Part shown: positions 1,740 through 34,339 of the stretch, piece after piece | Layout: every line of letters starts with the position of its first letter | Numbering within the stretch: position 1 is the first letter of the stretch | Position numbers and translations under genes: made by a program | Sequence record: NC_061418.1 | Length of the DNA stretch: 64,000 bases | Direction: 5' to 3' (one strand) | Notes under the pieces: model-generated | What the model saw: the letters and a program-made list of their open reading frames with translations, nothing else | Databases searched by the model: none | What the model was told of the DNA's origin: nothing

Positions 1740-1798
1740 AAATTCCTCAATTAAAAAGTGTCTTCTACATTAAAACGGTTTACCGTAAAAAAGCATAG

Positions 1799-1826
1799 GA
1801 GAGAGGAGGGAATTCCCTCCTCTCTC
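1799..1826 (-). terminator. Rho-independent terminator
   Basis: 12-bp stem GAGAGAGGAGGG-AATT-CCCTCCTCTCTC with a T-tract shortly downstream on the minus strand. Confidence 0.8.
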
Positions 1827-1992
1827 GATTAATTCATTTATCAAAAAGTGATCTCTTTGAAAAAGAAACTTTTGTGGTAAGAAGGGCGGAGGTAAGGATA
1901 TAACCATCCCCAACACCGCCCATAGCCATTCAGCTATAAACAGAATTTAGCGCGACCTATCTAAGAATAAGATTGGAAGTTTTATTTTATAA

Positions 1993-2087
1993 TCTAGTGC
2001 TCTACCGGCTGAGCTATCTGCCTCCAAGAAACACTCTGTGAATGTGTCCAGGTAGGCAGAGCGGAATTCGAATCCGCGACCTCTAGA
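1993..2087 (-). ncRNA. Circularly permuted tRNA-like module B (YrlA-like)
   Basis: Minus-strand order: TCTAG, AGGTC, T arm GCGGA-TTCGAAT-TCCGC, acceptor 3' strand TCTGCCT-A-CC, hairpin linker, acceptor 5' strand AGGCAGA, TA, D arm GCTC-AGCCGGTA-GAGC, A, CTAGA. All four stems pair. Confidence 0.85.
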
Positions 2088-2190
2088 ATTCTTTCCGTAA
2101 AAGAAAGAAAGTTCAGTCCGCTATTTTACTGTTTACTCTTTATCTTTAAGCGTGTGAGGCGATAAGATAAAGTTAACACTAACCATCTGG

Positions 2191-2305
2191 GTCGCATTAT
2201 GGGTGCATTGATGACTGCGTCTACCAATTCCGCCATTCTCCCATAGTTTGGTGGGAGAAGAAAGAGTCGAACTTCCAGTGGGGTCATCACACCTGCAACA
2301 CGGAC
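2191..2305 (-). ncRNA. Circularly permuted tRNA-like module A (YrlA-like, Leu-type D loop)
   Basis: Minus-strand order: TGATGAC, CCCACT, T arm GGAAG-TTCGACT-CTTTC, TTCTCCC-A-CCA, AACTAT linker, GGGAGAA, TG-GCGGAATTGGTAGACGC, A, GTCATCA. Outer bulged helix GTC(C)GTGT/ATGCGAC. Confidence 0.85.
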
Positions 2306-2378
2306 TAACAATAAAGATAAGGTTGGCCTCAATCTTTATTATCAATGGGCACTCGTGAGAATACCCATTACTAACACA

Positions 2379-3146
2379 TTAAGCAGTGAAGTTTTTCAGA
2401 ATCACGTTGGTCAGTACTTCGCCGATAGAACCCTGAACAACTTCGGTGCAGTTTGCACGCATACGTGCATTAGTGACTTCAACGATCAGTTCGTCGATAT
2501 CACGCAGTGCGTTGGCTTTCTGCATCGGGGTGCAGGCGCCGGAATAACTTTTACGGGTGAAGCTACCAATTACGACGGTGCTTTCCGATTCTTTCACCTG
2601 TGCAGGGTGGTGGTCGGTAGCCGGCGCCAGGATAACCGGAGTGAGTACTTTCTCGGTTTTCGTCGTGACTTCGTCCGTCACGGTACGGAATCCGTAGGTG
2701 CTGTTGCTATCGCGTTCCCATTGTTTGGACGAATCCAGAGTAGGGGCAGCGGCGATCAGTTTGCGCAGTTCCGCCAGGCGTTTTTCCAGGCCCAGGAGTT
2801 CATCTACCGGCACTCCAGAAACGAGGACTTCGCCTTTGAACATGATGTCTGCTTTTGCGACCTGGTTAGTCAGGGCTTTTTGCAGGCGAAGGTCTTCTGC
2901 CGTGGCGAAATATTCGAAGAGGTACTGCAGCGTTTCGGCAACAGTGGTGATCACTGCCTTGCTGGTACTTTCGCTTTTTTCGATCGCGGCGTTGGCGTCG
3001 TTGTCTTCGTGCAGTTTCAGGGTTTTATCAAACCCGCTGAAATATTCAGCCGATTTATTGAATTTTTTACTGGCGTCTTCGATCAGGACTTGCACTTGTT
3101 TGGTGCGAGTGGGTTCTGCTGCCAATACTTCGTGTAACTTAGCCAT
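2379..3146 (-). CDS. Conserved hypothetical coiled-coil-rich protein (family recalled as DUF7873, unverified)
   Basis: 255 aa, strong codon bias, RBS AAGGA. The segments AKADIMFKG..VPV..LL.LEK.L and K.EK...P..L.PAT..HPAQV match a widespread phage/bacterial family I recognise from memory. Confidence 0.6.
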   Translation of the reverse strand: MAKLHEVLAAEPTRTKQVQVLIEDASKKFNKSAEYFSGFDKTLKLHEDNDANAAIEKSESTSKAVITTVAETLQYLFEYFATAEDLRLQKALTNQVAKADIMFKGEVLVSGVPVDELLGLEKRLAELRKLIAAAPTLDSSKQWERDSNSTYGFRTVTDEVTTKTEKVLTPVILAPATDHHPAQVKESESTVVIGSFTRKSYSGACTPMQKANALRDIDELIVEVTNARMRANCTEVVQGSIGEVLTNVILKNFTA

Positions 3147-3247
3147 TTGATTTCCTTACGATAAGAGTGAAAATAAAGTTTGTTCATAAACTAGTTAACG
3201 ACGTAAAATAAAAAAAAAGAAAGGGCGTACCCTTTCTTTTTGGCAGA

Positions 3248-4664: not shown

Positions 4665-5834
4665 TTAAATAAAACTTGTTTTGATCATACTTTCAGTTTC
4701 GATGAAGGTCTCCCAGTTTAATGCTTCCGCCAACGTGATTTTCTCACGACCAGCGAAATCTACCGGTTCGAGATCAACTGCGCTCCGGGCCTTCGCTGCT
4801 TCGGTTTCGTTTAACGTTCTGAATGACAGGGCTTTAAACAAACGGCCGGGGCGAATAATTGCATTATCGACTGACTTGAGGTTAAGTAAGTTAGTTGAGA
4901 TAATGAATTTGACGTTACCGGAAGTGATCCCCTCTGCGGCGTTTAATAAACCGGACATTAAGCTATTACCGTTTTCGCGACGCTCCAGCATAACTAGCTG
5001 GTCTTCGGTGACGAGCCAAGTACCGTCATCCAAATCATGGATATACGGAACAATAGATGGCGAATTGAGTACGTCTGCAGTATCCGCTACAACGACGTTA
5101 TCATTTTTTTGTTCATTTTTCCACCGTATCATTTCACGAATGAACTGACTCTTACCTAACCCTGGTGCACCATAAAGGACTAAAACATTATTGTTTGATT
5201 TATCAAATGCTTCCGCCAATTCCGCAGGGGATAATGAGAAATAAGGCCAGAATCCCTTAAAGTCTTTTATCTCTTTTTTATCTTGCAGTCGTTTGTTCCG
5301 CGCAACGACATTACCGGCAGCATTCAGCGACAAACGAGAAACCGTTTCCGGTAAGCGGGCCGTGAAGAACGTACTGATGATTTCCCCGAACCCTTGACAG
5401 AGATCGTCAGGCCCGTAACAGAATACAAAGTTTTCTGAGACACCGGACCCAAAATAGAGCATCCCTACAATCTCTCCTCGTAGGTTAGCGAGAAGGAATG
5501 CCCCAGGAATAATTTCGGTGTAAACAAAAGTGTCGAATTTCGAGAGGTAATTACGTAACTGATTGGAAAGCAGTTCCTCAACACTTTTCCCTAAGTCGCG
5601 TGCATTCCCTGTTAACCAAAACCCTTTCCTTGAGAAACCCATAGGGCGATTATTGACCCCCAAGAAAATTTTGATCGCTTTTTTAACATGGTCGCCGTTA
5701 CTTCGACCTTCAACATTTATCCGGCAGTAAATATCGAAAAATTCCATCATTTCTTCTTTGAGCTTACCTGAATCGGCGCGTGCATTTGACGTAAAATCTT
5801 TAGTCAAAACATTGTTTTTACTTTCATTAGCCAT
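4665..5834 (-). CDS. AAA+ ATPase with N-terminal extension
   Basis: Walker A GAPGLGKS, Walker B-like LVTED, sensor-1 IISTN, second region of homology DNAIIRPGR. Confidence 0.85.
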   Translation of the reverse strand: MANESKNNVLTKDFTSNARADSGKLKEEMMEFFDIYCRINVEGRSNGDHVKKAIKIFLGVNNRPMGFSRKGFWLTGNARDLGKSVEELLSNQLRNYLSKFDTFVYTEIIPGAFLLANLRGEIVGMLYFGSGVSENFVFCYGPDDLCQGFGEIISTFFTARLPETVSRLSLNAAGNVVARNKRLQDKKEIKDFKGFWPYFSLSPAELAEAFDKSNNNVLVLYGAPGLGKSQFIREMIRWKNEQKNDNVVVADTADVLNSPSIVPYIHDLDDGTWLVTEDQLVMLERRENGNSLMSGLLNAAEGITSGNVKFIISTNLLNLKSVDNAIIRPGRLFKALSFRTLNETEAAKARSAVDLEPVDFAGREKITLAEALNWETFIETESMIKTSFI

Positions 5835-6362: not shown

Positions 6363-7631
6363 TTAACGACCGATAAAGCCGCCTTGTTTGATCTCGCTTT
6401 GCAGCGCCTGATACGCTTCCCAGTTTAATGCTTCCGCTAAGCTGAGTTTGGACACGTTACCGAAATCAATTGGAGGATGCCCTATCGCAGCGCGGGCGGC
6501 ATTAGCTTGATCAGCTGTTAACGCTTTGAACGGGATGACGCGTAAAGTACGACCTGGACGATACAGGGCATGATCAACGTCTTTTAACGACGTGATGTTA
6601 GTTGAGATAATGAATTTGACATTACCAGAGGTGATCCCTTCGGCAGCATTCAGTATCCCAGCCATCAGACTGTTACCCATATCACGTGCTTCGATCATTT
6701 CATGGGCGTCTTCAGTCACCAACCAGCTGTTACTTGGCATGTCGTGAACGTAAGGTGTAAACCGCGGGGATTTAAATACCGGGTTATCGTCGCAAACAAA
6801 TACGGTACCGTAAGAGTTCTCATCTTTCCACTTGATCATCTCGGCGATATATTGGCTCTTACCTAACCCTGGCTCGCCGTACAAAATCAGTACGTTCGAG
6901 TCACTGGCTTCAAACTCGGCTGCCATCTCACGAGGTGACTTGGGTGCGAATGGCCAAAAGGCTTTTGGATCGGTAACTGTGCGCCGTTGTTTCAGTGTTT
7001 TATATTGACTTTGAACATCATTGTTACCTGTTAAACAGAGCCGACGAATGGTAATATTCTTCTCTTTATTCTGGAAGCTGTTGAAAATATCTTTGAGGAT
7101 TTTCCCGATCGAAAAGTCACCAACGTAAAAAAATCTTTGTTGGCTACCATTATCTTCTATTTGGCATGTCCCTACAATTTTATCATCACGAAAGATAAAG
7201 AAGCTCCTGTGGCTAAATGGTTCAGTATAGATTCCGTACTGATTCATTTTGTCCAAGAAAAGTTTCAGTACTTCCATTTCAAATTGAAAGGCCGTATCAC
7301 CAAAAGGACGTTCGTAGTTAATGAACGTTTGAATACTCACTGCTTCCCTTTCAAGCAGTTGAAAGAAACGCATTAGCAATACCTGACTATTTAAGTTTTC
7401 GCTAACTCGTTCTACCGTGGGGTAAAGTCCTTTAAAAATCAGACGGTGGAATTCTTTAATTTCTTCGTACTTTTTAGCGCGAGATGCTTCATTAAGCGGT
7501 GGGTAATTCAATAATATCTCATGGAAAATCGCAGTACGAGAAGATAATAGAGTATTAGTTTCTTCTTCAACTGCTTCTTCCCAAGGTGCTAGAAGTTCTA
7601 CTGATTCTTCGCGGAAAGCATGTAAGGACAT
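6363..7631 (-). CDS. AAA+ ATPase, paralog of 4665-5834
   Basis: GEPGLGKS, WLVTED, LNAAEGITSGNVKFIISTN, DHALYRPGR. Confidence 0.85.
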   Translation of the reverse strand: MSLHAFREESVELLAPWEEAVEEETNTLLSSRTAIFHEILLNYPPLNEASRAKKYEEIKEFHRLIFKGLYPTVERVSENLNSQVLLMRFFQLLEREAVSIQTFINYERPFGDTAFQFEMEVLKLFLDKMNQYGIYTEPFSHRSFFIFRDDKIVGTCQIEDNGSQQRFFYVGDFSIGKILKDIFNSFQNKEKNITIRRLCLTGNNDVQSQYKTLKQRRTVTDPKAFWPFAPKSPREMAAEFEASDSNVLILYGEPGLGKSQYIAEMIKWKDENSYGTVFVCDDNPVFKSPRFTPYVHDMPSNSWLVTEDAHEMIEARDMGNSLMAGILNAAEGITSGNVKFIISTNITSLKDVDHALYRPGRTLRVIPFKALTADQANAARAAIGHPPIDFGNVSKLSLAEALNWEAYQALQSEIKQGGFIGR

Positions 7632-9465: not shown

Positions 9466-10103
9466 CTTTGAGTGTTGTGAGCAAAATCACCTTTAATCAC
9501 GACGCTCTCTGTAGGGTTGTTCTCGGACGAGAACAACCTTTCTGCTGCATCCCTGATAATCTGGATGTTATCACGGAAAAGGTCGCTCTGTTGTAGACGG
9601 TGAGTTTCCCTGAAACCAAATGCCTCAAACGGAATATTTTGGAACTCCTTTAAACCCCTTTCGACTAAGAAGTCTTGATCATCCGTATGAAAACCTCCCA
9701 GAGCCTTATAATTTTCTGGGGGAACTATGGCTATCTGCCAATTTCCGGCTGAATAACAAGGGAGTTCAGTCAGAATGAATTCTATCTCTTTGTGCTCAGA
9801 ATCGATAATGTTAGGGCCTTTTAACTCTTTAATAATCTGAGAAATCCTGGCCGAAGAGAGTTCGTACATCTCCGCTAATTTCCTTTGTGGGATACCGGAT
9901 AAAAACCCCACGCCAATATTCAGCTTTTTGATCTCTGCTAAGATCGCTTTTGTTTCCGCAAGCATCTTATCAATCTCAGGGTTAGCTTGACCCAGCTTAT
10001 GCTGATACTCTAACCTTTCAACAATAGTCTTTGTTAAAGTTAATAAGTCAGTCTGTGTATTTGTCCATTTCACTAACTCCTCAATACTCAACGATTTCTT
10101 CAT
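9429..10103 (-). CDS. HTH-containing protein
   Basis: GIPQRKLAEMYELSSARISQIIKEL is an HTH pattern; RBS GAGGAGG before ATG at 10103. Confidence 0.6.
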   Translation of the reverse strand: MKKSLSIEELVKWTNTQTDLLTLTKTIVERLEYQHKLGQANPEIDKMLAETKAILAEIKKLNIGVGFLSGIPQRKLAEMYELSSARISQIIKELKGPNIIDSEHKEIEFILTELPCYSAGNWQIAIVPPENYKALGGFHTDDQDFLVERGLKEFQNIPFEAFGFRETHRLQQSDLFRDNIQIIRDAAERLFSSENNPTESVVIKGDFAHNTQRWMFYVSLKEEK

Positions 10104-10439
10104 CTTTTCCTCCTCAAGAGACATAATCCCAGAGGAGAGTTTTATACTCTCTCTCCAGGTCAATTATTCGTATTGTTAACTACCAGCGTAATCTTCATTT
10201 CAATCAGATTACTTGAAGGAGTATTACTCCCTTCCGGTACCTCTTTACCTTAACCGAGAGTTCACTGTGTTCACTCTCTCTAAGGAAGGTACCTGCAGTA
10301 CGTAATAGCTAACTGTTTCGGATTGGTGCATTATTTAAAACCACCCCCTTTCCCCCAAAACTTTATTTTTACCATTACCCTCAAAGTGACCAGTAAAACG
10401 ACCTTTGATTCACATATAAAGAAAAAGCGTTAAAAAATA

Positions 10440-11411
10440 TTAATTACTTTTCTCAATAAACCGATAACGAAATAATTCAGTTTCAATAATCGGGAAATAG
10501 GATCTGTCACGGTATTCGTTTAAGATCAAATTGTGGTAAAAAATCGCCTTCTTAAACTCGCTATCTGATTTATGAACATCCCTATAACGATTGATAGAGG
10601 GTCTTTCATAATACGCGTAACCAAGAGAAACGATCAGGTTGATGAGTTTACTTTGAGTATCGATCCCATCTAAGGATTCGTAGTGATCGAAATAATCTTT
10701 GTAAACATTATCGGATGGATCTAAAACGAAACGATCAAAATTCCAGCCAGAGTGCCTGATGACCAACTGGTATTTTTCTGGATTGCGTAGAATAAGATCC
10801 AGTGGAACACCCAGTCCAAACTCATCTTCGTTATCGCCATGATAAAGAGAATTAACCTCTCGATCAATGAGTTCAATAACACGTTCCTCTGGTAAATTAA
10901 CCGAAAATTGAAGCTCCTTCATTCTGCGAATATTGGCAATGACCCCAGCTAACTCCGGATCTTTAGGTTTCCTTAATAACCCTACCCCAAAGTCGGTGTC
11001 AATTTGAAAGGTACATTTATCGGAAGTTAAATTTTCGATATACCGCCGGGCAGCCTCTTGAAAATATTCAGTTATTTGACTATCGTCAAGGGCTAAATCG
11101 GTAAAGCAATATTCGGCCTCAGCAAAACGCCGAAATAAATCAACCACGGTTTCTTTCCGTTTCTTCTTATCCCATGAAGGATTAAAATGAGTACTGGTAG
11201 CAACGTTGGATCGGAATAAAGAATCACCCGGTAGCCGTACCATAACCCCATTTCGCTGACTGAAAAATTGTACAGCAATGAGATCTTGTTGATCTATTCC
11301 AAAAAGATGATTGAACCGTTCAATTGAGTTCTCTAAATCTTTACCATCGAAATAAATGTCGAGATCATTATTTTCTTCTACTTGCTCCGTGCGATACAGT
11401 GTCTTTTTCAT
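10440..11411 (-). CDS. Hypothetical protein
   Basis: 323-aa ORF, ATGA-coupled to the upstream gene. Confidence 0.75.
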   Translation of the reverse strand: MKKTLYRTEQVEENNDLDIYFDGKDLENSIERFNHLFGIDQQDLIAVQFFSQRNGVMVRLPGDSLFRSNVATSTHFNPSWDKKKRKETVVDLFRRFAEAEYCFTDLALDDSQITEYFQEAARRYIENLTSDKCTFQIDTDFGVGLLRKPKDPELAGVIANIRRMKELQFSVNLPEERVIELIDREVNSLYHGDNEDEFGLGVPLDLILRNPEKYQLVIRHSGWNFDRFVLDPSDNVYKDYFDHYESLDGIDTQSKLINLIVSLGYAYYERPSINRYRDVHKSDSEFKKAIFYHNLILNEYRDRSYFPIIETELFRYRFIEKSN

Positions 11412-11650
11412 GCGACCTTCTCCCCGTACTTCAAATTGACGACAAACCCAACTTTCTCTAACCCGGAAAGATCTCTCTGACCTAACATGCGAAGGAAAGT
11501 TTGATTAATGACAATCTGGCTACGGATCCCGACAGGCAGTCGTTTTCTTTCACGTAACGCTTCACGAATACGTTTACGAAAATTCTTACAAGTTTCTTCA
11601 TCCAGCGTCGCCAGCTTTTTCAGATCGTGTTCAATCAGTGCTAAAGTCAT
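11408..11650 (-). CDS. Hypothetical protein
   Basis: 80-aa ORF, RBS AAGGA. Confidence 0.6.
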   Translation of the reverse strand: MTLALIEHDLKKLATLDEETCKNFRKRIREALRERKRLPVGIRSQIVINQTFLRMLGQRDLSGLEKVGFVVNLKYGEKVA

Positions 11651-11663
11651 GTTATTTTCCTTT

Positions 11664-12029
11664 TTAGTGTTTAATGAGTCTGTTGAAGTATTCGTCAGGG
11701 ATAGTAACTAAGGGTTGAGATTTCCCTTCGCTGATTAATCCGATCGGAAAACCCTGATCACTGTACCCGATGATTTTCACTAATCGGATATGTTTAAGGT
11801 GTCCCGATTGATAAACAACATTATTCCGTCGTTTCCATTCTTCGATCAACCGCTGTTCTTCGAAGAAGTCATTGGCGGTCGTTAAATAACCCTCAGGAAT
11901 CTCTGAGGGCGTTTTCACTGCAATAAGGTAGTACTTATCCAAAACTAACTGATCGATGCTCAGAGGCGCATTCAGGAACCCTGACATCGGTCGAGTTTGG
12001 TTAGCGGTAATATCGATCGTGACTTTCAT
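11664..12029 (-). CDS. Hypothetical protein
   Basis: 121-aa ORF, RBS AAGGA. Confidence 0.65.
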   Translation of the reverse strand: MKVTIDITANQTRPMSGFLNAPLSIDQLVLDKYYLIAVKTPSEIPEGYLTTANDFFEEQRLIEEWKRRNNVVYQSGHLKHIRLVKIIGYSDQGFPIGLISEGKSQPLVTIPDEYFNRLIKH

Positions 12030-28147: not shown

Positions 28148-29258
28148 TTAATTCATTCAATAACGAAAGAGTCTTTTCAATTTTACTTGCCGGGATTTGT
28201 TCGTTCTCCCAGCGCTGTTTGAACAGAGGTTGAATACTTGACGGCGTGATAGGAGTAAACTCAAAACGTTTCTGAGTGAACGTGCTCCCCGCCACCGTTT
28301 GGGTTTTCTTTCCTCTTCTGATCTCACTGAGTTCATAATCAGGGAAAGTAGATTTAAGAATTTCCATCCACGCCGTCACCGGGTCATCGGACATAAACTC
28401 TAACCTTATCGCCGAGCCTTTCGGGAGATCACTCTGCCTGTCGATGAGATCGATAATTTCCGGGAAATCTAAACCGATAGTAGAAAGCGTACGGTATATT
28501 TTCGCCTGCTGATTAATCCGGCGTTTAAAGTCGACCTCTTTCCCGTTTAAGAACGTCAGTTCGATCACACCTTTAGGTTCTTCTTCCCCATGACCAAGTC
28601 GCTCCAATGAACCCACAGAGACCCATTTCAGATACCGACTGTGGTTATGGATATGCCCAGAGAGAATGACCAGGGAGACAAGATCACTCCATTTCACCGC
28701 ATCGTGTAACGCAGGGGAATGAATCCCAGGCAACTGATAAGTACAACCCCCATGAACAATAGCGATATCGACTTTTTCCAGCCCGCGAGAATGAATCAAA
28801 TCCTTAACCTGCTGGAGCGTTAGTTCCGCGTTATGAGTCCATTCATCGGGAAGGTAAAGTACGTTGATATCCCACGCCTCAAAATATTCGATACTCAACG
28901 TATCAACGTATTTCAGTTGCGCGTCAATCCCCTCGCCGTCGTTGATAAAATCGAAAATCTGATTCTGTCGACGGTCATGAGAGTTGGTCCCTTCTAATAC
29001 ACGGAGTAAAATGTTCCATTTTTTACAATAGCGCAAGAGGTGACGAACACCTTCAATTGCGTAGTAGATATCGGGTTCATTGAAACTGACCAAATGATCG
29101 AAGTAATCCCCTGACACCGTGAGGATGTCTAAATCGGGCTTTTCTTCCATCGGGTAAAGTCGCCTTAACCCCGCAAGCATTCGAGGGGATTTGGTTCGCT
29201 TATGGAAGAAGTGAATATCGCTGACAGCACCTATTGTGAGTTTTTTGTCAGAAATCAT
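28137..29258 (-). CDS. SbcD/Mre11-like metallophosphoesterase nuclease
   Basis: SDIH, SGDYFD, EGTNSHD, VHG and SGHIH motifs. Confidence 0.9.
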   Translation of the reverse strand: MISDKKLTIGAVSDIHFFHKRTKSPRMLAGLRRLYPMEEKPDLDILTVSGDYFDHLVSFNEPDIYYAIEGVRHLLRYCKKWNILLRVLEGTNSHDRRQNQIFDFINDGEGIDAQLKYVDTLSIEYFEAWDINVLYLPDEWTHNAELTLQQVKDLIHSRGLEKVDIAIVHGGCTYQLPGIHSPALHDAVKWSDLVSLVILSGHIHNHSRYLKWVSVGSLERLGHGEEEPKGVIELTFLNGKEVDFKRRINQQAKIYRTLSTIGLDFPEIIDLIDRQSDLPKGSAIRLEFMSDDPVTAWMEILKSTFPDYELSEIRRGKKTQTVAGSTFTQKRFEFTPITPSSIQPLFKQRWENEQIPASKIEKTLSLLNELIEE

Positions 29259-32437: not shown

Positions 32438-34339
32438 TTAACGACCGCCGAAACCGTAAGAAGAACGGGCACGAGAACGGAAACCTGCACCGTCATAGCC
32501 GTTGGATTCGTAACGAGAGGTATAACCACGACGGCTGGTACGGCCATCCTGAGTAATACCATCAGCGGTAACCACCATGCCTGCTGCAGACAGTGCGCGG
32601 GTCAGGCCGAACAGCCAGTTGGCGTTCACTTCGATGACGTCTGCACGGTCGGTGATCTGATACTGACCGCCGGTGTAGTCTTCGATGATTTTTTCCATCT
32701 GGTCCATACGGACTTGCAGATCGATCGAATCGTCGTTCAGGCAACGATCGTAATCGGCAACCACCTGCGGAGATTTCAGACCGAAGTTGGTCAGAATTTC
32801 GTAGTAACCGATTTCACGCAGGTCACGTTTATGACCCTGTTCGTCGATCCAGGTGCCCAGCAGTTGCGGCATGTCGCGGATGATACCCACGTCGTACAGA
32901 TCTGAGGTGTTCATGATGGTAGAGAAACGATCGCCGGAGATGTTGTCGGCGGCTTCGATCAGCACGTCAACAGCTTCTTTACGGTTCGGGTTCGTTTCGT
33001 CGCACGCATCAACCAGCAGCTGCAGCAGCGGGGTGTTGATGGAAGAACGCGGGATCTGGATCTGAACGATCTGGCTGTTCTCACGAACAACGTTAGCCAC
33101 CAGGCCAGCCCATTCGTCGTCGTTCAGAACTTCCGGGAGTTTTTCAAACTCGCCTTTCAGTTCATAGGTCAGAGCTTCAGCGGTACGCAGCGCGCCTTTG
33201 GTGTTCAGCGGACGCAGACCCTGAATCAGAGCCGGTTCAGTCATCAGTGCAGATACCTGTGCCAGAGAGAACATCAGGTATTCAGGAATCGCCACGCATT
33301 TCAGATCGCTGATCACCAGAGCGATACCGTAGATACGGGTATCGAAGTCTTCCGCTTTCTTTTTGCGCAGTGCAAAGAAACTGTTGGACTGCTCTTCTTC
33401 GCCTTTGTAATACAGGTCGACGTGGGAGATCAGACCGGCCAGCTGAGTGGACTCACGCTCGGACAATACGTTAACAATACCGCCACGACGTTCGTCACGC
33501 GGCGCCACCATCAGATCAACAACGATATCGGCGCGATGCGGCATTTCGGTGATGTCGTCAGCAACGTCACCTTGATGGAACGCGATGTTCGCCAGCAGAT
33601 CGTTATTTTTCAGGTCCAGCGCCGCAATGCTGAACTCGTTAGTGGTCAGGATCGCGTTAACGGAATAGATGATCTGGTTGATCACGGCAGAAGCGATACG
33701 CTCCAGTTCTGCGTCGGTCGGTTTGTCCAGGAAGATCGGGGACGCCGCCAGATGCTGAACCTGGCCGGTGAATGCCGGGTTGGACAGGGCAATCAGATCG
33801 TCCAGGGACTCTTTATAGCCGATCGCTTCGTACTGGTCGTTAGCGGTGGTGGTGAAACGCACGGTGTGGTCACGACCAACCTGCACGGCCTGTTTCGGCA
33901 TCACGGTGTTACCCACGAAGATCACGGTAGACGCGAAGATCATGCCGTTGTCTTTCAGACGGGCAGCGATGACCGCAGCGTCCAGTTTCATTTGGGTATC
34001 TTTGCCTGTTGCCGGCGTTACCGTCCATTCCAGGACACCGTTCAGGCTGATCGCGGCGCTGTGCTGTTTCTGGATTTCTTTGGTCAGTTCGACGAATTTG
34101 GCTACGTCGCCTGCCGCAGAGTTCAGGGACAGTACTGGCGCATCTTTACGGAAGTTATAGGATGAAGTCACTTTTTTCTCCTGACGGGAATCATTTTCGT
34201 TGGAACGGGTGTAAAAGGAACGGCGGCGTGCAGAGGATTCTTCCTGGCGACCTTCGTCGCGAGAAGTTTCCTGCGCACCAGTTTCTACTGCTGCTTCTTC
34301 TGCTTTGTTTTTGTTGTGATCGTCATCACGTAAGGCCAT
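32438..34339 (-). CDS. chmA: Chimallin, phage nuclear shell protein
   Basis: 633 aa with very strong codon bias and disordered charged N-terminus; located between the gp52-like gene and the gp55-like RNAP gene, as in phiKZ and 201phi2-1. Confidence 0.85.
   Translation of the reverse strand: MALRDDDHNKNKAEEAAVETGAQETSRDEGRQEESSARRRSFYTRSNENDSRQEKKVTSSYNFRKDAPVLSLNSAAGDVAKFVELTKEIQKQHSAAISLNGVLEWTVTPATGKDTQMKLDAAVIAARLKDNGMIFASTVIFVGNTVMPKQAVQVGRDHTVRFTTTANDQYEAIGYKESLDDLIALSNPAFTGQVQHLAASPIFLDKPTDAELERIASAVINQIIYSVNAILTTNEFSIAALDLKNNDLLANIAFHQGDVADDITEMPHRADIVVDLMVAPRDERRGGIVNVLSERESTQLAGLISHVDLYYKGEEEQSNSFFALRKKKAEDFDTRIYGIALVISDLKCVAIPEYLMFSLAQVSALMTEPALIQGLRPLNTKGALRTAEALTYELKGEFEKLPEVLNDDEWAGLVANVVRENSQIVQIQIPRSSINTPLLQLLVDACDETNPNRKEAVDVLIEAADNISGDRFSTIMNTSDLYDVGIIRDMPQLLGTWIDEQGHKRDLREIGYYEILTNFGLKSPQVVADYDRCLNDDSIDLQVRMDQMEKIIEDYTGGQYQITDRADVIEVNANWLFGLTRALSAAGMVVTADGITQDGRTSRRGYTSRYESNGYDGAGFRSRARSSYGFGGR

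Follow-up and report, generated by a model that had tools for sequence, protein, structure and literature searches.

Permuted, anticodon-less tRNA-like RNA modules linked to DUF7873 genes in Klebsiella jumbo phage KpLz-2_45 and other phages: a putative YrlA-like family

Introduction

YrlA RNAs are defined by the order of a T arm, an acceptor-like stem-loop and a D arm, by the motif GNCGAAN0-1G, and by a location no more than 4 kb from a Ro60/TROVE gene (Chen et al. 2014, PMC4201824). In M. smegmatis, where the YrlA acceptor stem measures 7 bp, the RNA is cleaved by RNase P and ends in CCA in vivo, and a trans-acting ribonucleoprotein (RNP) is the established model for RNAs beside Ro60-like genes, while junctions of tandem tRNA genes are recognized as false positives of YrlA-type models (PMC4201824). 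The present study concerns two permuted tRNA-like modules (A and B) downstream of a gene for a 255-aa DUF7873 protein in a stretch of 64,000 nt (hereafter the window, to which coordinates refer), which is identical (100%) to positions 186001-250000 of NC_061418.1, the record of the Klebsiella jumbo phage KpLz-2_45 (Siatvirus). The relatives of this phage at 89-99% identity include vB_KpM_FBKp24 (phiKp24), Centimanus and LPKP23. We consider it slightly better than an even bet (roughly 0.55) that modules A and B belong to a previously undescribed, phage-specific family of YrlA-like tRNA mimics that is tied to DUF7873 and acts together with it.

The best Rfam match of module B is YrlA (RF02553), with a full-length alignment, 37.6 bits and E = 1.2e-5 (gathering score 69), and the modules present the same succession of 5' stem strand, T arm, acceptor-like stem-loop, D arm and 3' stem strand, and a helix stands where the anticodon arm would be. 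Moreover, they share the 7-bp acceptor stem of the M. smegmatis RNA, and, as for YrlA/YrlB, one or, often, two tandem RNA copies adjoin a specific protein gene and share its strand. In contrast to YrlA, which is bound by Ro60/Rsr and tethers it to an effector such as PNPase, the neighbour of the phage RNA encodes DUF7873, NCCA is encoded in most modules, and the family is essentially phage-only. The Ro60-binding motif GNCGAAN0-1G had no match in 2380-1750 (minus strand), and no Ro60/TROVE gene was found among the window neighbours, in the related loci or among 43 open reading frames (ORFs) of 400-640 aa across the KpLz-2_45 genome.

Other RNAs resemble tRNA without decoding. The mascRNA/MALAT1 element and viral tRNA-like 3' structures are RNase P substrates at the 3' end of a longer transcript. 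These two, together with the skipping-rope, DUF2693-FD and salivarius-1 mimics, are like the phage modules in being tRNA-shaped non-decoders, yet they differ in connectivity, hosts and context; a permuted order with an encoded CCA and a link to DUF7873 are found in none of them. The motifs in a 2026 preprint on three bacterial tRNA-mimic families are likewise other than the DUF7873-linked RNA. Neither DUF7873 nor its RNA was found described in a literature search that also covered permuted tRNAs in phages, tRNA-like phage RNAs and DUF2828 (see below). What is new is the combination of the YrlA architecture with another partner gene, with a CCA end that is encoded, and with a distribution limited essentially to phages. 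Protein and RNA define a conserved two-component unit, in which the 255-aa protein is accompanied by a tRNA mimic that lacks an anticodon and has its CCA end encoded, and DUF7873 gains its first functional lead. [quoted passage not shown]

Permuted tRNA bodies of modules A and B

Both modules occupy a 640-nt minus-strand stretch without genes, located between the DUF7873 gene and a 295-aa ORF. Module A starts 102 nt and module B 301 nt past the DUF7873 stop codon on the same strand, which places module A ~200 nt upstream of module B. An earlier note, made from the letters of the window, had described module B as a permuted tRNA body on the minus strand, with the 3' half preceding the 5' half, and each of the elements that it listed was found in place. 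Module B and its surroundings comprise the following features (R1 is the covariance model described below):

1993..2087, minus strand: module B core (R1 model, 53.1 bits; Rfam YrlA, 37.6 bits)
2087-2083 (UCUAG) paired with 1997-1993 (CUAGA), minus strand: closing stem, 5 bp
2082-2078, minus strand: variable loop AGGUC, its last base being C48
2077-2061, minus strand: T arm GCGGA-UUCGAAU-UCCGC with canonical loop
2060-2054 (3' strand UCUGCCU) and 2023-2017 (5' strand AGGCAGA), minus strand: acceptor helix, perfect 7 bp
2053-2051, minus strand: 3' end, A73 and CC; the next base is U, not A
2050-2024, minus strand: linker hairpin, with CC (2052-2051) paired with GG (2025-2024)
2014-1999, minus strand: D arm GCUC-AGCCGGUA-GAGC of the D region, which also has U8 and A9; A14, G15 and G18G19 present
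2115..2136, minus strand: 5' strand of the basal stem around module B, pairing with 1957-1936
2089..2109, minus strand: anticodon-arm-like hairpin preceding module B, with stem UUCUUUCU/GGAAAGAA and a UUUUACG-type loop
1936..1992, minus strand: 3' tail with an unpaired A/U-rich part, a small hairpin (1973-1959) and the 3' strand of the basal stem (1957-1936)
1831..1935, minus strand: extra hairpins at 1935-1924, 1921-1884 and 1870-1831, probably outside the functional core because of their poor conservation (78% identity to FBKp24)

Module A has the same plan with a longer closing stem:

2185..2305, minus strand: module A, permuted and tRNA-like, with long closing stem (R1 model, 49.8 bits)
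2305-2283 paired with 2215-2185, minus strand: closing stem, ~17 pairs
2276-2260, minus strand: T arm
2259-2253 (3' strand) and 2242-2236 (5' strand), minus strand: acceptor strands
2252-2249, minus strand: encoded A73-CCA, followed by the 6-nt linker AACUAU (2248-2243)
2233-2217, minus strand: Leu-type D arm

ARAGORN called a tRNA in module B when its halves were re-ordered (2023-1991 joined to 2090-2051), as the earlier note had anticipated, and also in re-ordered module A. The native-order window yielded 0 tRNA genes with ARAGORN and no match with Rfam at gathering thresholds. In addition, the four-way junction of module B was recovered in the minimum-free-energy fold of the entire intergenic region, and the fold z-scores were -3.46 for 2135-1960 and -10 for 2380-1750. 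A strict module pattern, composed of a 5-bp T arm, the T-loop consensus, a 7-nt strand, a fully complementary strand within 100 nt and a D arm, returned the adjacent modules A and B in the real window, plus a spurious match in a coding region at +4423. The same pattern gave 0.11 matches per dinucleotide-shuffled 64-kb window and at least two matches in 0/100 shuffles, and a chance origin of the modules is unlikely.

According to the structural models, each module would fold as the upper body of a tRNA, with acceptor and T arm stacked, a D/T elbow and no anticodon loop, and the would-be anticodon stem is predicted to extend into a long imperfect helix formed by the 5' and 3' flanks of the RNA. 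The stem CTAGA/TCTAG, which the earlier note regarded as an anticodon-type stem left open, is indeed present as 5 bp in module B but does not end there, continuing as a long imperfect helix. For the same reason, the circular junction suggested in that note, by which an anticodon loop would be rebuilt, received no support. The element as a whole is defined by the context around module B, namely the sister module A, the DUF7873 gene and the YrlA-like architecture.

A DUF7873-linked RNA family in phages

A search of IMG/VR with DUF7873 retrieved 63 loci at 30-48% protein identity, 57 of which remained after duplicate removal. DUF7873 was the only gene cluster common to all of these 10-kb loci, and the other neighbours varied, with primase, DNA ligase and tRNA arrays among them. 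The strict pattern detected a same-strand permuted module in 50/57 loci, mostly 100-250 nt past the stop codon, and the covariance model R1, built on 27 short-linker modules, placed a module just 3' of DUF7873 on the same strand in 55/57 non-redundant loci. R1 was also applied to four cultured phages, and in each a module lies behind the DUF7873 gene on the strand of that gene: Rhizobium RHph_TM30, Vibrio K479, Ralstonia phiRSL1 and Gordonia Ronaldo, the last two having two copies each. Two tandem modules of differing tRNA flavour recur, as seen in the window, in two of the IMG/VR loci (L042 and L052), in phiRSL1 and in Ronaldo. The phages with DUF7873 and the RNA have hosts spanning Proteobacteria, Actinobacteria and Cyanobacteria. 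A single match to DUF7873, on a contig of a metagenome-assembled genome, was obtained in 185,579 bacterial and archaeal species genomes, and the family is essentially restricted to phages.

The linkage was also approached from the RNA side with a T-arm/CCA/D-arm pattern, which had 87 matches in IMG/VR. Most of these (81/87) had no more than 5 of 7 complementary acceptor positions, representing tandem tRNA junctions, and DUF7873 was upstream in 0/66 of the poorly complementary matches having enough upstream DNA. Four matches were fully complementary, and DUF7873 was located directly upstream in two of the three with enough upstream DNA; the third (L091) follows a 508-aa protein with DUF2828 and vWA domains.

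Covariation was evaluated in 54 modules, a set partly chosen first by a complementarity filter and aligned by fitting to the model. Standard pairs occupied 99.5% of the pair cells, and all 16 of the 16 pairs changed on both sides, giving a covariation score of 0.93 vs 0.22 in shuffles, while slid controls paired at 37-51%. Two further analyses are independent of the filter. The outer flanks paired better with their own partner than with those of other loci (-30.9 vs -22.2 kcal/mol, p = 1.6e-14), and constrained folds returned tRNA geometry (a variable loop of 4-5 nt and one nucleotide past the D stem), beyond which a long imperfect helix extends over 150-230 nt, with ~14-50 closing pairs in most modules.

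With respect to the acceptor end, NCCA is encoded in 47/54 modules and NCC in 51/54. A short A-rich linker follows an invariant CCA in 32/54 modules, with U at -1 in 31 of these 32, and the remaining 22 have long linkers, mostly hairpins in which CC or CCA is paired with the linker end, module B included. The +1 base is G in 34/54 modules. Thus, the hairpin through which the earlier note saw the acceptor end of module B as sealed does exist with its CC/GG pairing, but it represents one of two linker classes of the family, and the analogy with M. smegmatis YrlA (PMC4201824) makes a processing substrate more likely than a permanent seal. D-arm flavours were generic in 38 modules, Glu/Asp-like in nine and Leu-like in three, module A lying outside that set.

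A leader is also conserved between the DUF7873 stop codon and the module, both in the window (2300-2368, minus strand) and in the loci L011-L069. Its helix strands covary by eye (GGG with CCC, GUGAC with GUCAC, GGAG with CUCC) and are followed by an A-rich motif. Furthermore, a tract with 6-nt periodicity occurs in many loci (lag-6 autocorrelation of 0.32 vs ~0.25), and the statistical support for leader conservation is modest. Hexamer repeats in 3-5 copies can be read in many leaders, for example GACUGA x3 in L045 and CUCAGG x3 in L067. The corresponding features in the window, together with the spacer between the modules, are as follows:

2345..2368, minus strand: leader hairpin P0 (GGGUAUUC / GAGUGCCC), then AUUGAU, equivalent to the family leader motif GGG ... 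UUGCCC(N)AAA
2306..2344, minus strand: second leader hairpin, the 3' strand of which carries the hexamer-like tract CAACCU UAUCUU UAUUGU UAGUCC
2138..2172, minus strand: spacer hairpin between modules A and B, invariant in four related phages

Conservation between close relatives

Comparison of KpLz-2_45 with FBKp24 revealed that the module region is conserved far above the synonymous sites of the adjoining DUF7873 gene: identity reached 97.9% in the module B core, 98.6% in the leader, 100% in the spacer hairpin and 93.4% in module A, compared with 71.1% at the third codon positions of DUF7873. Among the 21 differences in 2305-1936, 13 are unpaired, six preserve pairs and two break weak outer pairs; the six include both sides of a compensatory double change (U.G -> A-U at 2297/2193) in the closing stem of module A. 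The differences in the module B core are confined to loops, and the basal-stem substitutions at 2133 and 1948 preserve pairs; the flanks of module B are A/U-rich and vary among close relatives. The proposal of the earlier note that module B is a permuted tRNA body retained by selection for the L-shaped fold, rather than a decayed tRNA, is therefore supported by the near-identity of its core, the placement of its substitutions and the covariation of all stem pairs across the family.

The DUF7873 protein and its putative transcription unit

The gene and the RNA are arranged between two terminator-like sites:

3214..3241, minus strand: intrinsic-terminator-like hairpin and U run upstream of the DUF7873 gene, insulating the unit at its 5' side
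2379..3146, minus strand: DUF7873 (Pfam PF25283) protein gene, 255 aa (Pfam E = 2.7e-72)
1788..1826, minus strand: intrinsic terminator, a perfect 12-bp G+C-rich hairpin (1826-1799) and then a U run, closing the unit

A terminator scan of the unit detected nothing terminator-like in the interval from the DUF7873 gene to the modules. With such hairpins at both ends and none between, the DUF7873 gene and the structured RNA are taken to form one unit bracketed by two terminators. As read from the four-phage alignment, the stem of the hairpin at 1799-1826 has another sequence in FBKp24, with its pairing retained. Downstream of the RNA region, the 295-aa ORF (1739-852) received no assignment in family searches and is poorly conserved (65.9% identity between KpLz-2_45 and FBKp24), and on these two grounds it was excluded from the RNA element.

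The 255-aa protein matched Pfam DUF7873 over its full length with 243.8 bits (cut-off 27). It fell into none of the PHROG, NCBIfam or PADLOC families, sequence and profile searches of PDB returned no match, and all 232 DUF7873 homologues are named 'hypothetical'. The confident AlphaFold2 model (predicted local distance difference test, pLDDT, of 84.7) consists of long helices and long beta hairpins and had no Foldseek match at E below 0.01 in PDB or BFVD. Cas7 subunits of Cascade, the top PDB rows in Foldseek, were rejected as relatives, their TM scores of ~0.1 being taken as noise.

YrlA-like modules beside a DUF2828 protein

The third complementary match of the reverse search lies in L091 (IMGVR_UViG_3300050151_000071), with the following features in the coordinates of that locus:

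9820-10200, minus strand: tandem permuted modules
10337-11860, minus strand: 508-aa DUF2828 + vWA protein with Ro60-like architecture, the modules lying downstream

One of these modules is perfect, the second is Leu-type with 6/7 acceptor pairs, a third is possibly present, and NCCA is encoded. They reach 34 bits with the Rfam YrlA model, comparable to module B. The protein beside them has no relation to DUF7873. In IMG/VR this DUF2828 + vWA protein has more than 344 relatives, and a module recognized by R1 or the strict pattern was present in ~7-12 of 80 such loci, compared with 55/57 for DUF7873. Homology between DUF2828 and TROVE is marginally supported, as judged from the domain architecture and a profile match of E = 0.084 to PDB 9l5y/9kop. 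The DUF7873 loci show that the YrlA architecture is not tied to Ro60.

Proposed mechanism and alternative explanations

In the mechanism that we favour, the DUF7873 gene and the RNA would be co-transcribed, and RNase P would cut 5' of the acceptor 5' strand (at +1). The upstream piece would then be trimmed to NCCA, with the ACC end of module B completed by the host CCA-adding enzyme. The product would be a CCA-ended tRNA mimic in two pieces, joined through the acceptor helix and the long stem, as for M. smegmatis YrlA. The mimic and DUF7873 may form a ribonucleoprotein in which DUF7873 takes the place that Ro60 has for Y RNAs, and the complex could engage, titrate or redirect a host factor recognizing the elbow or the acceptor end of tRNAs, the candidates being tRNA-processing/modifying enzymes, ribonucleases, translation factors and defence toxins attacking tRNA 3' ends. 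By analogy with YrlA, RNase P cleavage and a CCA end are probable for the phage modules, and U-1, G+1 and NCCA, signals of the RNase P type, are frequent in the family. The fuller proposal, in which the unit is a phage-specific, Ro60-independent RNP counterpart of the Y RNA system and its host-matured, two-piece, anticodon-less and CCA-ended mimic captures, blocks or redirects a host factor, is put forward tentatively, at somewhat less than even odds. If it were true, it would represent a new class of viral tRNA mimicry, in which lytic phages of many bacterial phyla use the mimic, for example against a defence toxin modifying tRNA 3' ends or an RNA-decay/repair machine.

Several points weigh against a mimic acting together with DUF7873. 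Expression, processing and partner binding of the RNA are predictions for every member, and an identical gene-RNA linkage would arise if the DUF7873 mRNA were the cis target of the RNA. In many loci the stop codon is followed within ~10-15 nt by the structured leader, which suits an element of the 3' untranslated region (3'-UTR) equally. Module B, with its hairpin-paired acceptor end, G at -1 and A at +1, is a poorer RNase P substrate than module A, and its YrlA score lies well below the Rfam gathering threshold (37.6 vs 69 bits). Regarding the protein, its pI is near-neutral to acidic (median 6.6; 5.55 in KpLz-2_45), and database and Foldseek searches revealed no recognized RNA-binding domain or structural relative in DUF7873; its putative role as a partner therefore derives wholly from the gene-RNA linkage. 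Moreover, the loci were gathered via DUF7873, complementarity was already required when the modules were first selected, and the independent reverse test is small (2/3).

The main rival is a cis-acting 3'-UTR element, in which the modules would be processing or stability signals for the DUF7873 transcript and, elsewhere, also for the following tRNA array. An RNase P cut would set the 3' end of the mRNA, and the CCA-ended fold would shield it from 3' exonucleases, with no RNA-protein complex needed. Such an RNase P-defined, protected 3' end is known from the MALAT1 mascRNA element and from viral tRNA-like 3' structures. The gene-to-module interval without a terminator-like site, the terminators at the unit borders, the structured leader right past the stop codon, the U-1, G+1 and NCCA signals, and the ordinary tRNA genes often within ~50 nt past the module all fit such an element. 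A generic stabilizer, however, would be expected behind many genes, whereas the module follows DUF7873 in 55/57 loci across phyla with other neighbours varying. The complete D arm and the long closing helix go beyond the recognition needs of RNase P, tandem modules of different tRNA flavour recur, and similar modules adjoin Ro60-like genes, where a trans-acting RNP is the established model (PMC4201824). On balance, the cis-acting element, which accounts for the location just past the stop codon but not for the exclusive linkage to a single protein family across phyla, is regarded as unlikely, albeit the alternative to be taken most seriously.

The other explanations that have been or could be proposed each treat the modules as known tRNA-related genes, and all are far less probable than the cis-acting element. 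Permuted tRNA genes of the Cyanidioschyzon merolae type yield complete tRNAs via a circular intermediate and have an anticodon loop and a bulge-helix-bulge motif. The phage modules resemble them in the 3' half upstream of the 5' half, the short linker between the acceptor ends and the canonical body, and the annotation of a kptA RNA 2'-phosphotransferase, an enzyme of RNA-ligation pathways, in the record would suit a gene whose ends are joined, anticodon loop rebuilt and acceptor end opened. This origin is nevertheless very improbable: no anticodon loop can be formed, since the 5-bp closing stem is prolonged by the long imperfect helix both in the window and in the family, the bulge-helix-bulge motif is lacking, and the flanks of module B are A/U-rich and variable in close relatives. 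A decayed remnant of tandem tRNAs (a 3' half and the 5' half of the next copy) or a two-piece transfer-messenger RNA (tmRNA) has an equally slight chance. Tandem tRNA junctions do score on R1, but lower, and they are the known false positives of YrlA models (PMC4201824). The gene order agrees with that of permuted tmRNA genes, which as two-piece tmRNA likewise have T arm, acceptor 3' strand, CCA, linker and acceptor 5' strand in succession, pieces that would be joined by a long helix replacing the anticodon stem, and expected processing at the acceptor end; a weak beta_tmRNA match (24.8 bits vs a threshold of 84) was also seen. In contrast to these, the modules have perfectly complementary acceptor strands, outer flanks that pair mutually, strong purifying selection with covariation, and a canonical D arm; G3:U70 was found in 0/54 modules, pseudoknots are absent, and neither a tag reading frame nor a permuted tmRNA was detected in the window by ARAGORN or Rfam.

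The least probable of all is the suppressor tRNA annotated in the relatives. A 'tRNA-Sup-TTA' or 'tRNA-Stop(tta)', called by tRNAscan-SE and ARAGORN, is annotated in FBKp24, Centimanus and LPKP23 (coordinates in related phage records: L001 3345-3424, L002 3346-3429 and L003 3352-3435), corresponding to 2134/2129-2050 of the window, and it has been discussed as a suppressor in the phiKp24 group (bioRxiv 10.1101/2021.03.02.433402). The call joins the hairpin at 2109-2089, as an anticodon arm, to the T arm and acceptor 3' strand of module B. ARAGORN and Rfam give no tRNA in the window, however, and the acceptor helix of the call has 4/7 pairs there and 5/7 in the relatives, the A at 2133 (G in the relatives) further weakening it. 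A canonical D arm is missing and position 37 would be C, whereas in the competing permuted fold the acceptor helix is perfect and a D arm is present, and this is the fold conserved family-wide. With 4-5 of 7 acceptor pairs and no D arm, the call is probably a tRNA-finder artefact, and the published suppressor annotation in the phiKp24 group would be corrected accordingly.

Additional features of the loci and the genome

Rfam at gathering thresholds reported only ordinary tRNAs and one tmRNA in 14 related loci, ordinary tRNA genes often occur within ~50 nt past the module in other phages, and the DUF7873-RNA pair lies in or near tRNA regions in several examined cultured phages. The tRNA cluster of KpLz-2_45 is located ~3 kb further downstream of the gene-free stretch. 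Several DUF7873 loci, L069 and L026 among them, are inside large tRNA arrays. In L008, a distant phage contig, an odd tRNA-like gene (5640-5711) with a 6-nt anticodon loop, reported as 'tRNA-???' by ARAGORN and with 48 bits by the Rfam tRNA model, stands directly past the permuted module. The tRNA-rich contig of L035 carries a phage tmRNA (7543-7899; Rfam 89.6 bits), which the DUF7873-RNA pair precedes by ~1.8 kb.

Upstream of the DUF7873 unit, two paralogous AAA-type ATPases (4665-5834 and 6363-7631, minus strand) both match phrog_14322. Furthermore, a 633-aa ORF at 32441-34339 (minus strand) matches the Phikzvirus chimallin family (E = 2.8e-21), suggesting that KpLz-2_45 probably builds a phage nucleus, which bears on the site where a tRNA mimic would meet host factors. 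Outside the window, the record NC_061418.1 annotates an RNA 2'-phosphotransferase (kptA/Tpt1-like; 28320-28883) beside a phosphohydrolase, a pair that hints at an RNA repair or ligation pathway. In addition, one ORF elsewhere in the KpLz-2_45 genome matches the Thoeris inhibitor Tad3 (E = 6.6e-23).

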